64,000 nt of DNA from Bigelowiella natans CCMP2755 (taxonomy: Eukaryota > Protista > Cercozoa), in contig ADNK01000542.1 in NCBI GenBank assembly GCA_000320545.1, positions 124,001-188,000 on the forward strand, read 5' to 3'. Shown here in pieces: positions 44,556 through 52,505 of this stretch. The notes under the pieces were generated by a model that saw nothing but the letters and a program-made list of their open reading frames with translations, was not told the DNA's origin and searched no databases. The number at the start of each line of letters is the position of its first letter. The stretch's first letter is position 1. Both the position numbers and the translations under genes were made by a program.

Positions 44556-45591
44556 CTATGAGGAACCCAAAAGTTTTTCTATGTCCGAATAGTAATTTCT
44601 TCTGTCTGCATCAAGATTTCGTAAACCTTTAAAAATGTTAGAGATTCTCTTGTTAAATTTGTCGTTATGTACACCTCTAGCTTTTAAGCCTCCAATTAGG
44701 AATGCTATGGCCAGTAATGCCCATTTGCAGTCAGGTTCAACTTCAAGTAATTCTTCAGCAACATTCTTCTCGCGTTGAAGAATCTTAATTTGTCCTTCTT
44801 TCTCTGCTATAAGTACTTTTTTCGGTTCAGTGAGGGATTTTGAATCCTTTTTCACACCTAACCCGATTACTAGTCCGAGCAGCCACCGATGATATAACCA
44901 TGCACTCTGATCACCTGGATCTGTAAAAAAAGCCTGCTGGAGAAGACTAAATTCTTCGTCGATGAGATTTCTAATATTATCCTTACCAGCAGAATCTAGT
45001 AACTTTGGTATGATGAAACTCCGATGGTGCCATGCAGAGTAATTTGAAAAATTCTCGTCAATTTTGGAGGAAGAAAAGTGAAGCTCTTCCCCAAGAGGCA
45101 CTTTCCCTACCATCATGACATAACGTCTATAATTCCAACAATGGAAGTTTCTGGAGTCATACCCTAGATATTTTGAGCAAAGTCCGATTTCGGTTTTTAA
45201 GTTAGTGGTTCCCTTTGCTATGACCCACAATCTGTGATGCCATGCGTAGTATGATTTCGGATTCTTACGAAGTGCTGACTCAGCAAGCTTCATCTCTTCT
45301 TCACAAATACTCTTCTTTTCTTCAGGATTCGCTTGTATCATTCGAATTACACTCTCTCTCCGATAATTCCACAAGCTGTAGAAATCTGGATTTATCGCTA
45401 TGAGGCTTCCTGTCAATTCAAACATTTTCGACGAAAAAACTCCCTCGCGATGCGCTTTCAAAACGACTTTCGAAAGCTTGGAATAGTGCTTTACTTTTTT
45501 TAGTTTTTTTTCTCTCTCTGCTTGAGAAACAGCTTCATAGTCCACACGCTGGATTCACAGACGATGTGTGAGTTACATTTATCAAATATGT

Positions 45592-49530: not shown

Positions 49531-49977
49531 GCAGATAACTTTAATGTCGTTAGCTGATGCCAAACTTGTTAGCAAATTTCAATTCACGACGCGATTACTT
49601 GCAGCAGCATCATGTCATTTTCATGAACTTTCGCACCGCAGCTACGCTCACCAAGAAAACAACATCTGCGTGACCACGATCTAGACGATGCATTCGATTC
49701 ATTTTAAAATGAGCGTGGCTAGATGGGACATATCAGTATGTAGTAGTGTAGCGTAGACAGCATAGCATCAATTTGCCCACAATCTTCATTCCATGTAGAG
49801 CTAGGTAGTTTATATTTATAATTATTGGCTTTGTTGGCACTTGTAATACAACCAAAAAGTGATGACAGAATATTACAGAGGTTAAACTAATTCACACACT
49901 AAATTCATGTACACACTGCTAGACTGCCGAGTCCAGATTTGCCAAGTTCATACACGTCGACGTAACTAGCTATGTAA

Positions 49978-52505
49978 CTAACGATTTTTTAGACAATTCT
50001 TCGATATAAATGATTACTAAACCTAAAAATTAGAAAGGGTTTCTGCAATATGAAATTGCCTCATTACATTGAATGAGCATATAACATCACCTGTGGGCTG
50101 CTTCCTTGATTTCTGAACCTTGAAAAACCTTCCAGGCGGGATGACGTATTCATCCTCGCCTTTGAAAGCTGAAAATTTTTGTATACTGACCGCGGAATTA
50201 GGCTGTATGTAAAACAAGGTCCGACTTCCACTATTTCCAATAAAATCTTTTGCAATTTTTACATCGCCTGGAAGCAATGTAGTCTCAATCATTTATTCGT
50301 TATTTCTGAGATGATGATTACTTGTGCATGAGCTCACACCCCACCATACCACTTGTTTTCCTACTGGGTAATCTTTCGCGAGATCTGCTTTGACACCTCT
50401 GTACAACTTCTTTGTGAATTTTGGAAGCTTTTCTAGCGCGACCGTTAAAAGTTTCAGATATGGAAAATACACCTAACGCAATAAACCTCATTCATAAACT
50501 GTGGGAAGTATAGAGTATGTTAACCTCCAGCCCTTTCCTTAATGGATCTCGCAACTTCTCATTTAACTTCCGATAAAAGCCACACTCTTGAGTGTACAGA
50601 TGCACGGCTGCCCTCTCATTAAATTTCAGGACAGAGTCATCTTCTGAATGTTCGATGGCAAATTTTAGGCTGTTTTTAAGGAAAGGATTAAGGGACTTGA
50701 TAGAGGCAAAAAGAGGTTTGACTGCATCCATAAGAGGTACAAGTGGGAGCTTAGATATGCCTTCAATGGAAGGAAGCTTGAAGAGAGGCACTTCGTTTTG
50801 AAGGTCAGAAAGTCGCTTTAGATAAGACTCGTGTAGCATCATTGTGTCTTTTATAAAAACTGTCATCCGATCCGCTGTTTCCTTAACAGAAGAATTATGC
50901 AATGCGTCCCACTCACCTATTCGATAATATAGTTTTCTGTTATGAATCATGTTATGCTGGAATCCTCACTGCAAATAAAGTGGACCTTCACGTGGTAGCC
51001 AATCTACTTGATCCATCTTCAGCTCACCGAGAGCGCTGTTTATTCTTTTAAGTGGATTGCCAACGCCTTCTGTACCTTATCTCATAATAACACTCAAATC
51101 AGGAAATTCAAGCTAGGGTACAAAATAATTAATGAGTCTTACAAAATGATTCAGCGTTTGCAGCTGGGTTACAGTGCGATACGTGCCTGAAACTCATAAT
51201 TATTAGTCATTAATTGTTTCAGGTTTATCGTATTAACATCAGAGATCGCCATATTTCTACCGTATGGGAACATTCTGGAATAGGGGACTGATATTCTGAA
51301 CATATTGTCGAAGACTTTGAGCTTTTGTTCCCCACCAGACAAATACAACTCCCTGATATTTTGGATCGTCTGTTTGTTCCTTTGCTTTGAGAATTTGTTT
51401 CACGATTTCCTTAATAACAGGTCTCCAAAATGAAATGTGAGAGCTATGATGTAATGATTTGTCGCAGGTAGACGTCAGAGAAGCATTTAACAGCAAGCAC
51501 CCTTGCGTCAGCAAAGCTTTGAAGTATGAGGGCGGCTGAAGAACTTTTGCCTTACTCAGAATTGTTCGCAATTCTTTAACTGGTGTGCGTTTGTTTACAA
51601 TTGAGCAATATTTGTCGGTTGCCATCAGCGCCGATTTTATAATGCATCTTATTGAAGTTACGCGGCCGAATCTCTTGTCGTCCCAATTGTGAAACGTGTT
51701 GTCGAACATCGCGATTCCTAATTGTTGAGCGTGAAAAGACATGTTGTAATTGTTAAAGGCAGGCGAAGAAAATTCAATGAGAGTCTACATCCGATGTATG
51801 TCGTAATTTCGTTATTCTCTCTCTACTCCTTATGCAGAAGAGAGAATACGAAAACATAGATTGTATTGAAAGTTATGTTCCAACCAGGAAAAAACCCAAT
51901 GATTTAGCTAGTGTGATTTTTCTAGCAGCAGCAATAATAGCAACACAACCACCACCACCTACTAGATAATGGTAATACACATCAATTTTCGACCTGTTGC
52001 AGATTCAACACGTGGATATGGTAATACATCAATTTTCGACCTGTTGCAGATTCAACACGTGGATATGGCGATTGTCCCAATATTATCACATTCCACCTCT
52101 CTGGGGGATTGGGTTTTAAGGCTTGGAAAGTAAGTTCTCTGACTGGAACAATTGCCTTCGATCTCTTCGGCCCCACAAACTTTGCAGCATTGAGTTGGCG
52201 TTCAATCATTGGTTTTAGGAGAGGTAACCAAGACTCGCCGCCCATGTTAAACAAAGCATTTAGCTCTAAAGGGTCACCTTCCTCAGTATTTTCTGACGAA
52301 CTTGAGGCAGTGAAAGGCTTTAAGTGTCCAACCTATTTAATTCGAAGACTTTTATTCGAATCTTCCGTTCATTCATTTGTCTAAATTGACACGTGGGGTG
52401 CACCTTTTGCTTCTTCTTGTTCTTCTTCTTGTTGTTGTTACTATGGATTTCATTTTTAACATCAGAAGCACCAGAATGCTTAAAACTGGCCCAATCCAAA
52501 TCCAT
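49978..52505 (-). CDS. Uracil-DNA-glycosylase-fold / ADP-ribosyltransferase (R-S-E clade) fusion protein, 9 exons
   Basis: Exons 52404-52505, 52041-52332, 51261-51717, 51143-51186, about 50987-51075, about 50525-50916, about 50322-50472, about 50091-50267, 49978-about 50021 splice in frame. UDG motifs: VIILGQSPYP, QGCLLLNASLT, FVWWG, HCNP, INSAL..VDW. ART motifs: LYT, LYRG, WWGVSSCT, SAFKGEDEYVIPPG. Confidence 0.88.

Follow-up and report, generated by a model that had tools for sequence, protein, structure and literature searches.

What is the purpose of a protein that joins a uracil-DNA glycosylase (UDG) fold to an ADP-ribosyltransferase (ART)? The question is raised by a locus in a stretch of 64,000 nucleotides of Bigelowiella natans CCMP2755 (contig ADNK01000542.1, positions 124,001 to 188,000), here called the window, whose numbering is used throughout. 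An earlier note, made from the letters alone, had taken the locus for a candidate DNA-sensing toxin or immune module that was transferred from Actinobacteria and acquired introns later.

The gene and its protein

The gene occupies positions 52505 to 49970 of the minus strand. Mechanical ORF calling yields only fragments, as the earlier note had observed, and these minus-strand ORFs are pieces of one gene. Exon placement, guided by a paralogue and an MMETSP transcript protein, produces nine exons that make up a single frame of 585 codons without a stop or frameshift. The coding sequence of 1758 nt (585 aa plus a TAG stop) ends at 49970. The single fusion frame had been recognized correctly; its length is, however, 585 and not about 560 aa, and its edge is at 49970 instead of 49978. 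All eight introns are of the GT...AG type, measure 52–323 nt and are consistent in phase. Splicing is judged from these canonical sites and from collinear transcript-derived proteins of relatives. P0205, the MMETSP transcript protein of a close relative, also comprises 585 aa, is 85% identical and is collinear with all nine exons. Since both P0205 and P0004 of Lotharella (MMETSP, 553 aa) contain the two domains in one protein, a single mRNA encodes them in these relatives. Sequence comparison confirms the nine-exon locus as a real nuclear gene of Bigelowiella natans, intact and split by introns.

The protein consists of a Lys-rich N-terminus, a UNG-like domain, a helical linker and the ART domain, in this order. 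Exon 1 (52404..52505; like all others on the minus strand) provides the start codon and the Lys-rich tail with the NLS-like KKKNKKKQK (52430-52404; aa 26-34) that had been pointed out before. The UNG-like domain begins in exon 2 (52041..52332), which includes motif A, GQSPYP (52077-52060; aa 120-125), with Ser at the place of the catalytic Asp. The core of this domain is provided by exon 3 (51261..51717), which contains QGCLLLN (51505-51485; aa 203-209) and WWGTKA (51337-51320). Exon 4 (51143..51186) covers the motif B region with HCNPAA (51176-51159; aa 288-293), which aligns with HPSPLS of UNG, and exon 5 (50986..51075) adds the C-terminal helix, ending in DWLPRE. The helical linker, which had been proposed and is present in the AF2 model of P0205, is encoded together with the N-terminal helices of the ART (LYTQE...FY..LN..LR) by exon 6 (50525..50916). 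The ART core follows in exon 7 (50322..50472), with the catalytic Arg in LYRG (50406-50395; aa 482-485) and the S-x-S motif SSCT (50334-50323; aa 506-509), and in exon 8 (50091..50267), where the ExE motif reads EDE (50157-50149; aa 547-549). The frame closes with exon 9 (49970..50022), whose 17 codons before the TAG correspond to the C-terminal ends of P0205, P0004 and P0121. A 47-bp tandem duplication of 2.1 copies (51969..52068, minus strand) spans the boundary of exon 2 and intron 2 and duplicates the donor site, the additional copy lying within intron 2.

Lys-rich N-termini are limited to the eukaryotic rows of our alignment A1; the bacterial homologues have no such segment. In the AF2 model of the orthologue P0205, residues 1-48 have a pLDDT of <50. 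The tail is predicted to be disordered and to resemble a nuclear localisation signal.

A uracil-DNA glycosylase fold without its aspartate

Database searches relied on proxies, i.e., the orthologue P0205, the paralogue P0207 (JGI Bigna1 69972) and a single-exon domain (L002:1267-2247); the exons of the window were searched singly. The single-exon domain of the paralogue retrieved family-1 UNGs from the PDB with E = 8e-10 (phmmer). The NCBIfam UNG models TIGR00628 and NF003592 matched with E values of 1e-15 to 1e-19, yet scores of 56-70 bits, of which about 70 for P0205, do not reach the curated family cut-offs of 162-237. PF03167 was not reported by a Pfam search of the single window exons and the paralogue domain. 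The AF2 model of P0205 (mean pLDDT 80.5) was matched by Foldseek to the Nitratifractor UNG 5x3h (E 3e-9, TMt 0.70), which reveals the UDG alpha/beta fold. The family-1-like fold postulated earlier is upheld by these comparisons, and the homologies to UNG and ART are, by sequence scores, far beyond chance.

The active site differs. When the paralogue is aligned with PDB entries, GQSPYP faces GQDPYH of the Coxiella UNG, which means that the water-activating Asp is replaced by Ser. The His of HCNPAA aligns with the UNG His; the position of the intercalating Leu is taken by Ala and that of the stacking Phe by Met. Because of these two replacements, specificity for uracil is uncertain. Gln, Tyr, the Asn of LLLN and the motif-B His are retained in the window's domain and represent much of the uracil-pocket scaffold.

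The loss of the Asp is not peculiar to the window. None of the 16 ART-fused cluster representatives has it (8 Asn, 6 Ser, 1 Ala, 1 Met); 33 of 71 short stand-alone relatives have kept it. It is also missing from all UNG-like relatives that are fused to a TKL kinase, to zf-PARP plus FHA plus PBZ, to SAP, to WWE or to SAM. The motif-B His varies among the eukaryotic ART-fused lineages and is gone from several. Of course, MUG/TDG and SMUG1, which make up UDG families 2 and 3, use an Asn in place of this Asp for catalysis, and the bacterial GQNPYP forms could for this reason still be slow glycosylases. The domain as a whole, homologous to UNG and devoid of the catalytic Asp, is predicted to be glycosylase-dead.

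That the homologues might be housekeeping glycosylases had been considered in the earlier note. Canonical UNG with GQDPYH is, however, encoded by separate genes elsewhere in the B. natans genome, and the fusion gene is therefore not the housekeeping UNG. The genome contains two further paralogues of the fusion gene, and the third family member, on contig C2029, has a degenerate motif A. A paralogue transcript, P0001, ends after the UDG-like exon; it could come from a retained intron or represent a short isoform of its own.

The ADP-ribosyltransferase domain

The ORF of exon 8 alone is recognized by PF01129 with 33.2 bits (4.3e-8) against a Pfam cut-off of 22.3, and the collinear orthologue P0205 reaches 58.8 bits. 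The catalytic residues are an Arg within LYRG (R484/R485), S506 and E547-x-E549; across 43 sequences no variation is seen at R484/G485, S506/S507, E547 and E549. Foldseek matched the P0205 model to Tre1 (6drh; TMt 0.80, rmsd 3.5), to ART2.2 (TMt 0.67-0.70) and also to Vis and C3. PF01129 with R-S-ExE was the only ART family reported, and neither a PARP catalytic domain nor an H-Y-E triad was found. As had been claimed, the domain has all its motifs; it is predicted to act as a mono-ADP-ribosyltransferase of the Tre1/Vis/ART2 type with a complete R-S-ExE set.

Bacterial relatives and the macrodomain partner

Similar fusions in Actinobacteria had been mentioned in the earlier note. They are real: hundreds of actinobacterial homologues of the whole fusion exist, about 49% identical over the full protein, a value also obtained with P0026 of S. 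venezuelae. Of 80 bacterial loci, all from Actinomycetota, 75 have a MacroD-like gene as neighbour or as part of the fusion. The orientation is divergent in 40 cases and co-directional in 17, and 18 loci have both in one reading frame; P0179 is such a Macro-UDG-ART protein of 770 aa. The macro partner had no match in the PDB when searched as a single sequence and weak MacroD-type matches when searched by profile; its AF2 model, with a pLDDT of 42, was left out of the fold search. The pairing points to a reversible ADP-ribosylation in bacteria. MacroD-type hydrolases usually cleave ester-linked ADP-ribose, not the Arg-linked one. Macrodomains with specificity for Arg exist, as exemplified by MavL (PMC10951314). 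A profile search with the bacterial partner yielded no orthologue in the B. natans genome (best E 0.86), and the Pfam Macro matches in this genome all fall on contigs other than the window's.

The fusion gene is accessory. It is present in 36 of the 151 Streptomycetaceae genomes searched, with one copy per genome and 80-88% identity across the family. Myxobacterial versions carry a VWA domain. Apart from the macro gene, the genes in the bacterial neighbourhoods are unrelated and do not form defence islands. The PADLOC models of known defence systems matched neither P0026, nor the macro partner, P0205, P0179 or the VWA form.

Overexpression of a Streptomyces Macro-UDG-ART gene, called ‘UDG-L’ in PMC13689562 (J Bacteriol 2026), moved the outcomes of base editing toward transitions, a result that the authors of that paper call not robust. 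The shift would fit a shielding of uracil.

Distribution and descent

The same fusion is found in Lotharella, Paulinella, diplonemids, a Noctiluca transcriptome, Myxococcota and Actinomycetota; its eukaryotic carriers are thus Rhizaria, diplonemids and, judged from a transcriptome, a dinoflagellate. In the trees, the chlorarachniophytes branch outside the clade of the Actinobacteria, and the bacteria form one derived clade if stand-alone relatives are used as outgroup for rooting. For these reasons an actinobacterial origin with later gain of introns, as once suggested, is not supported, and the wide eukaryotic spread does not favour it either. AU tests rejected neither a single clade of all eukaryotic ART-fused sequences (p 0.20) nor one of chlorarachniophytes plus Actinomycetota (p 0.10), and so agree with either direction of transfer. 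Judged from its sequences, this appears to be an uncharacterised family of many protists and of soil bacteria that became patchily distributed over protists, Myxococcota and Actinomycetota by horizontal transfer. The ART review of Aravind et al. from 2015 is said to mention such fusions. In two other reviews (PMC8120803, PMC9503650) neither uracil nor glycosylase is mentioned.

Related systems

The closest kin of the first domain in sequence and fold are family-1 UNGs, in particular those of the GQDPYP type (Nitratifractor salsuginis, 5x3g/5x3h; mimivirus, 6lyd). Motif A as Gln-x-Pro-Tyr-Pro, the Asn of LLLN, the WWG strand and the motif-B His are common to them and the window protein. The latter differs by Ser (Asn in bacteria) for Asp, by Ala at the Leu finger, by the lack of the Pro-rich loop and by its fusion to an ART. 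With the Arg-specific mono-ADP-ribosyltransferases of the ARTC type (PF01129; vertebrate ART2.2, Serratia Tre1, Vibrio Vis, C3-like exoenzymes) it shares R-S-ExE and the helical N-terminal subdomain. It differs in that it is not secreted, is no injected toxin, and has a DNA-repair-type domain fused to it and a nuclear-type tail. The cognate hydrolase in bacteria is a macrodomain and not an ARH, as it is in Tri1 or DraG.

An ART gene adjoining or fused to a macrodomain gene is also typical of the pairs DarT-DarG, SirTM-Macro and SidE-MavL, which the bacterial loci resemble; a link to DNA is plausible. The ART clade is, however, PF01129 and not DarT, PADLOC reports no DarTG match and the algal genome lacks the partner. 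PARP1-type sensors are similar only in the way they work, with a lesion-binding module upstream of a NAD-dependent writer, as is predicted here; a further link is the fusion of UDG-like relatives to zf-PARP, PBZ, FHA and WWE. The window protein deviates from PARP1 by R-S-E instead of H-Y-E, by being a predicted mono-transferase and by using a dead glycosylase as sensor in place of zinc fingers. Streptomyces ‘UDG-L’ belongs to the same family and is a triple fusion like P0179; this bacterial form has the macrodomain and no introns, and in PMC13689562 it was overexpressed in base-editing tests only.

A possible mechanism and its rivals

The best reading, to which we assign about even chances, is that the UNG-like module binds a DNA lesion or uracil and directs mono-ADP-ribosylation. 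By means of the glycosylase-dead domain the protein would attach to uracil or a similar DNA lesion, which would not be excised. The ART would then modify a target in the vicinity, most likely an Arg of a chromatin or repair protein or of the protein itself. The logic would be that of PARP1, a lesion sensor plus a NAD-dependent writer, built from different parts. In bacteria, the dedicated MacroD-like hydrolase, adjacent or fused, would reverse or restrain the modification; B. natans has no such partner. A context of DNA damage is suggested because relatives of the UNG-like domain are fused to zf-PARP plus FHA plus PBZ, to SAP, WWE, SAM and TKL kinase. The idea of a sensor coupled to an effector survives in spirit, considering the absence of the Asp from the ART-fused representatives and the bacterial macrodomain as eraser, and among the functions listed in the earlier note a PARP-independent repair signal would fit the context best.

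The protein could instead be an effector in biological conflicts, although we consider this unlikely. The dead UNG would sense foreign DNA that contains uracil or is modified, or act as a decoy for phage UNG inhibitors; an ART or NADase would then be unleashed as toxin and be countered by the macrodomain, the antitoxin of a DarTG-like arrangement. The nearly constant ART-macro pairing in Actinomycetota (75/80 loci), the accessory nature of the gene (36/151 Streptomycetaceae genomes), the myxobacterial VWA domain and the toxins Tre1, Vis and C3 as closest ART structures could all be so understood. The missing PADLOC matches, neighbourhoods that are not defence islands and a single copy per genome, conserved at 80-88% across Streptomycetaceae, disagree with it. 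Eukaryotic copies, moreover, have nuclear-type tails and no antitoxin, and related domains are fused to modules of DNA repair, not of immunity. The toxin or immune module of the earlier note is not borne out.

Two further readings are still less probable, and about equally so. In one of them the UNG-like domain remains a slow glycosylase that works with Asn or Ser, and the ART modifies the enzyme itself or downstream factors of base-excision repair for coordination. This would be allowed by the four residues that the window protein retains (Gln, Tyr, the Asn of LLLN, the His of motif B) and by the Asn with which UDG families 2 and 3 work; Ala and Met at the Asp position, the loss of the motif-B His in several ART-fused lineages, stand-alone relatives of the same subfamily that keep the Asp (33 of 71 short sequences) and UNG-model scores far under the curated cut-offs argue otherwise. 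In the other, DNA is the substrate: the UNG-like domain would position the enzyme at a base, the ART would modify the base or a DNA end like pierisin/Scabin, DarT or PARP10, and the macrodomain would remove the mark. A MacroD-like partner, from a class not typical for Arg-ADP-ribose, agrees with this, as does the reversal of nucleic-acid ADP-ribosylation by the macrodomains DarG, TARG1, SCO6735 and SCO6450 (PMC9411070, PMC8120803, PMC13036486). The known base-modifying ARTC enzymes, however, have QxE and not ExE (table in PMC8120803), and the nearest folds are Arg-specific protein ARTs. Finally, a decaying or non-expressed paralogue without present function is very improbable: the degenerate motif A on contig C2029 might suggest decay in this family, but the window's gene has 585 open codons, eight canonical introns and every catalytic residue that is invariant in the family, and its orthologous transcript is of the same length and 85% identical.

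What the family may mean

If the dead UNG directs the ART to uracil or lesions, the family would represent a second, PARP-independent coupling of DNA-damage recognition to ADP-ribosylation. A more far-reaching proposal, which we regard as possible but clearly less probable than lesion-directed ADP-ribosylation as such, is that of an unrecognised class of DNA-lesion-directed ADP-ribosyl writers. Here the dead UNG would read uracil, an abasic site or a modified base, the ARTC would mark chromatin, repair proteins or DNA, and the bacterial macrodomain would erase the mark. This non-PARP axis of damage signalling would be common to protists, Myxococcota and Actinomycetota, and the UNG-like domain would be a sensor with exchangeable outputs, wired also to kinases and zf-PARP/PBZ.

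Tractable Streptomyces operons already combine writer and eraser, and several protist lineages have nuclear versions. A uracil-binding module that does not excise could serve base-editing tools. Genes of this family have also passed between bacteria and eukaryotes, with introns colonising them later, and the AU tests fit either direction of this exchange. If true, a repair enzyme would have been repurposed here as a lesion reader, in which fusion to a signalling enzyme always goes along with the lack of the catalytic Asp.

Gene structure

The region has a G+C content of about 39%, and its ORFs are short on both strands. Minus-strand ORF fragments bear, in order, a Lys-rich start, GQSPYP (motif A), QGCLLLN...WWG, HCNPAA (motif B), a helical stretch ending with LYTQE..FY..LN..LR, and the ART motifs LYRG, SSCT and EDE. 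An MMETSP transcript protein and the paralogue located on contig C3177 served to place nine exons on the minus strand: exon 1 at 52505-52404, exon 2 at 52332-52041, exon 3 at 51717-51261, exon 4 at 51186-51143, exon 5 at 51075-50986, exon 6 at 50916-50525, exon 7 at 50472-50322, exon 8 at 50267-50091 and exon 9 at 50022-49970. All introns are of the GT...AG type and measure 52-323 nt; the phases close, and the spliced frame comprises 585 codons with TAG as stop. The small ninth exon proposed in the earlier note is real. It restores the conserved C-terminus of the family (G-L-x-I-I...L-V-x), which would be absent from a read-through product.

A 47-bp tandem duplication (51969-52068; 2.1 copies, 96% match) straddles the boundary of exon 2 and intron 2. 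It repeats the final codons of exon 2 together with the splice donor and so creates a second potential donor 47 nt downstream. The genomic setting is that of an ordinary eukaryotic gene, with a prenyltransferase alpha subunit as neighbour: about 5 kb away, a minus-strand ORF (44559-45545) contains five protein prenyltransferase alpha-subunit repeats (PF01239, 2e-43).

Homology searches were performed with the individual exons and with natural database proteins as proxies for the spliced product. The MMETSP transcript protein (P0205, 585 aa) aligns collinearly and without gaps to the translations of all nine exons at 85% identity, the missing residues coinciding exactly with split codons. It is thus an orthologue from a close relative with the same splice junctions. 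In Lotharella globosa, too, both domains reside in one ORF (P0004, 553 aa). One transcript of the C3177 paralogue (P0001) terminates after the UDG-like exon; this may reflect a short isoform or a lack of splicing. The window gene is intact, and the nine-exon frame and the collinear P0205 confirm the spliced fusion that had been noticed before.

A glycosylase fold and an ADP-ribosyltransferase

The single-exon domain of the C3177 paralogue matches family-1 UNG structures (E = 8e-10). Both P0205 and the Streptomyces protein are recognized by NCBIfam UNG equivalog models (1e-15 to 1e-19), yet with 56-70 bits only, the cut-offs being 162-237. The domain is a homologue of UNG without being its orthologue. 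For P0205, the AF2 model (mean pLDDT 80.5; residues 1-48 disordered) resembles the unconventional UNG from Nitratifractor (TMt 0.70). Gln, Tyr, the Asn of LLLN and one motif-B His are retained, the latter varying among eukaryotic ART-fused lineages. The catalytic Asp, however, is Ser in the window protein and Asn in bacteria. Ala aligns with the Leu finger of UNG, and opposite the stacking Phe stands a Met that precedes an invariant Phe. The Lys-rich disordered N-terminus is found in eukaryotic members only; in the C3177 copy it is of the PKKKLK type. Canonical UNG is encoded separately, with exon-wise matches at G000:C2559:1-1837 (L099) and G000:C2424:84512-87661 (L098). The C2559 copy shows GQDPYH, so that a housekeeping UNG exists apart from the window gene.

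The C-terminal domain of the P0205 model matches Tre1 (TMt 0.80), Vis, ART2.2 and C3. Arg484, Ser506/507, Glu547 and Glu549 are invariant in an alignment of 43 sequences, and all are found in the window protein. The R-S-ExE ART is intact and under constraint. B. natans also has separate PF01129 ARTs in long intron-free ORFs, an Ank-ART at one locus and a WWE-ART at two (L090 on C3341, L091 on C1267, L092 on C1731).

Loss of the catalytic Asp

When the bacterial UDG-like domain was the query of an exhaustive search, E values of 1e-30 or lower were obtained for 58 clusters, and of 1e-3 or lower for 1393. None of the 16 ART-fused representatives has Asp in the catalytic column (8 Asn, 6 Ser, 1 Ala, 1 Met). 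The 14 long non-ART representatives, which include a TKL kinase fusion (Thecamonas), zf-PARP+FHA+PBZ (dictyostelids), SAP, SAM and tandem-domain forms, lack it with one exception, a form without detected partner domain. Among 71 short sequences (< 420 aa; Gefionella and Kipferlia proteins, but also many fragments), 33 have Asp, as GQDPYP. Individual fusions of the subfamily in other protists (P0246, P0255, P0293, P0286, P0129, P0220, P0233), none with the catalytic Asp, combine it with a TKL kinase (Thecamonas), zf-PARP+FHA+PBZ or FNIP repeats (dictyostelids), SAP plus a second UDG-like domain, SAM, or WWE + ART.

Glycosylase chemistry thus seems to have been given up whenever the domain acquired a damage-response module or a signalling enzyme as partner. 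This loss is the main argument for considering it a DNA reader, not an enzyme.

Bacterial homologues and their macrodomain partner

Actinomycetota have hundreds of proteins, about 539 aa long, with the whole architecture; over exons 2-9, P0026 of S. venezuelae and the window protein share 49% identity. In a survey of 80 loci from species-representative genomes (75 actinobacterial, 5 Myxococcota), a conserved 226-aa macrodomain gene lies immediately upstream at all 75 actinobacterial loci: divergent in 40, co-directional in 17 and in the same open frame in 18, as in the 770-aa Macro-UDG-ART protein P0179 annotated by NCBI. The linkage is obligate in Actinomycetota; apart from it, everything in the neighbourhoods differs. 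The partner has the MacroD-type motif N-x6-GGVD and weak MacroD/YmdB-type matches.

No macro gene is found near the five Myxococcota loci (within 4 kb at L017, L021 and L082). These three have an N-terminal VWA domain instead, and in one myxobacterial genome the macrodomain is encoded elsewhere. The VWA-bearing versions measure about 1040-1060 aa, some 300 unassigned residues preceding the UDG-like-ART part.

Among the 151 Streptomycetaceae genomes searched, 36 have the gene, each in one copy (75-88% identity), which makes it an accessory one. PADLOC models matched none of the components. The sole mention found in the literature is a 2026 paper naming a Streptomyces Macro-UDG-ART gene 'UDG-L'; its overexpression moved base-editing outcomes toward transitions, an effect "not robust" according to the authors (PMC13689562). 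The family is uncharacterised yet visible in databases.

Distribution and origin

Beyond chlorarachniophytes, the fusion occurs in Paulinella, Diplonema (on a genomic contig of 235 kb), Flectonema and a Noctiluca transcriptome, and on further MMETSP and metagenomic eukaryote-like contigs; variants with WWE or SAM domains exist. In the full-length tree, a branch (support 100) separates the four chlorarachniophyte-type sequences from the rest; Actinomycetota group in a clade (99), with a grade of Myxococcota in between. When the tree is built from the UDG-like domain and stand-alone, kinase and zf-PARP forms serve as root, all bacteria fall into one clade (96) that lies among eukaryotic lineages. 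An actinobacterial donor of the algal gene, as formerly suspected, is not the favoured topology. AU tests rejected neither a single clade of all eukaryotic ART-fused sequences (p = 0.20) nor one of chlorarachniophytes plus Actinomycetota (p = 0.10); transfer between domains of life is clear and may have gone in either direction.

The B. natans genome has three UDG-like-ART loci, on C3195, C3177 and C2029. The C3177 paralogue (L002, G000:C3177:35509-38961) is JGI Bigna1 protein 69972 (P0207). In the C2029 paralogue (L003, G000:C2029:3448-6627) motif A is degenerate; this copy may be decaying. Few intron positions are common to the paralogues, and the entire UDG-like domain of the C3177 copy lies in one exon, which implies that most introns were gained or lost after duplication.

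Possible function

ExE ARTs with Tre1-, Vis- or ART2-like folds modify Arg. The UDG-like domain, whose relatives have partners of the DNA-damage type, would bind DNA at uracil or at a lesion; the ART would, because of its fold, modify Arg on nearby proteins, and the macrodomain would reverse the modification. An Arg linkage is not quite what a MacroD-type partner would lead one to expect, which keeps DNA or an acidic residue alive as possible acceptor. Arg-specific macrodomains are, however, known (PMC10951314). In favour of DNA, ADP-ribosylation of uracil and thymine bases by other enzymes is documented to be undone by macrodomains (PMC13036486, PMC9411070).

Bacterial members could possibly be defence or toxin proteins, as the earlier note had envisaged for the algal one. 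This reading found no positive support in the present analysis and suits nuclear algal proteins poorly. The earlier interpretation is, overall, partly supported: a DNA sensor coupled to ADP-ribosylation is still the preferred reading, whereas the defence role and the actinobacterial origin are not supported. The putative logic of a dead glycosylase as reader, an ADP-ribosyl writer and a macro eraser would be a novel variation on known ADP-ribosylation systems and merits biochemical follow-up.
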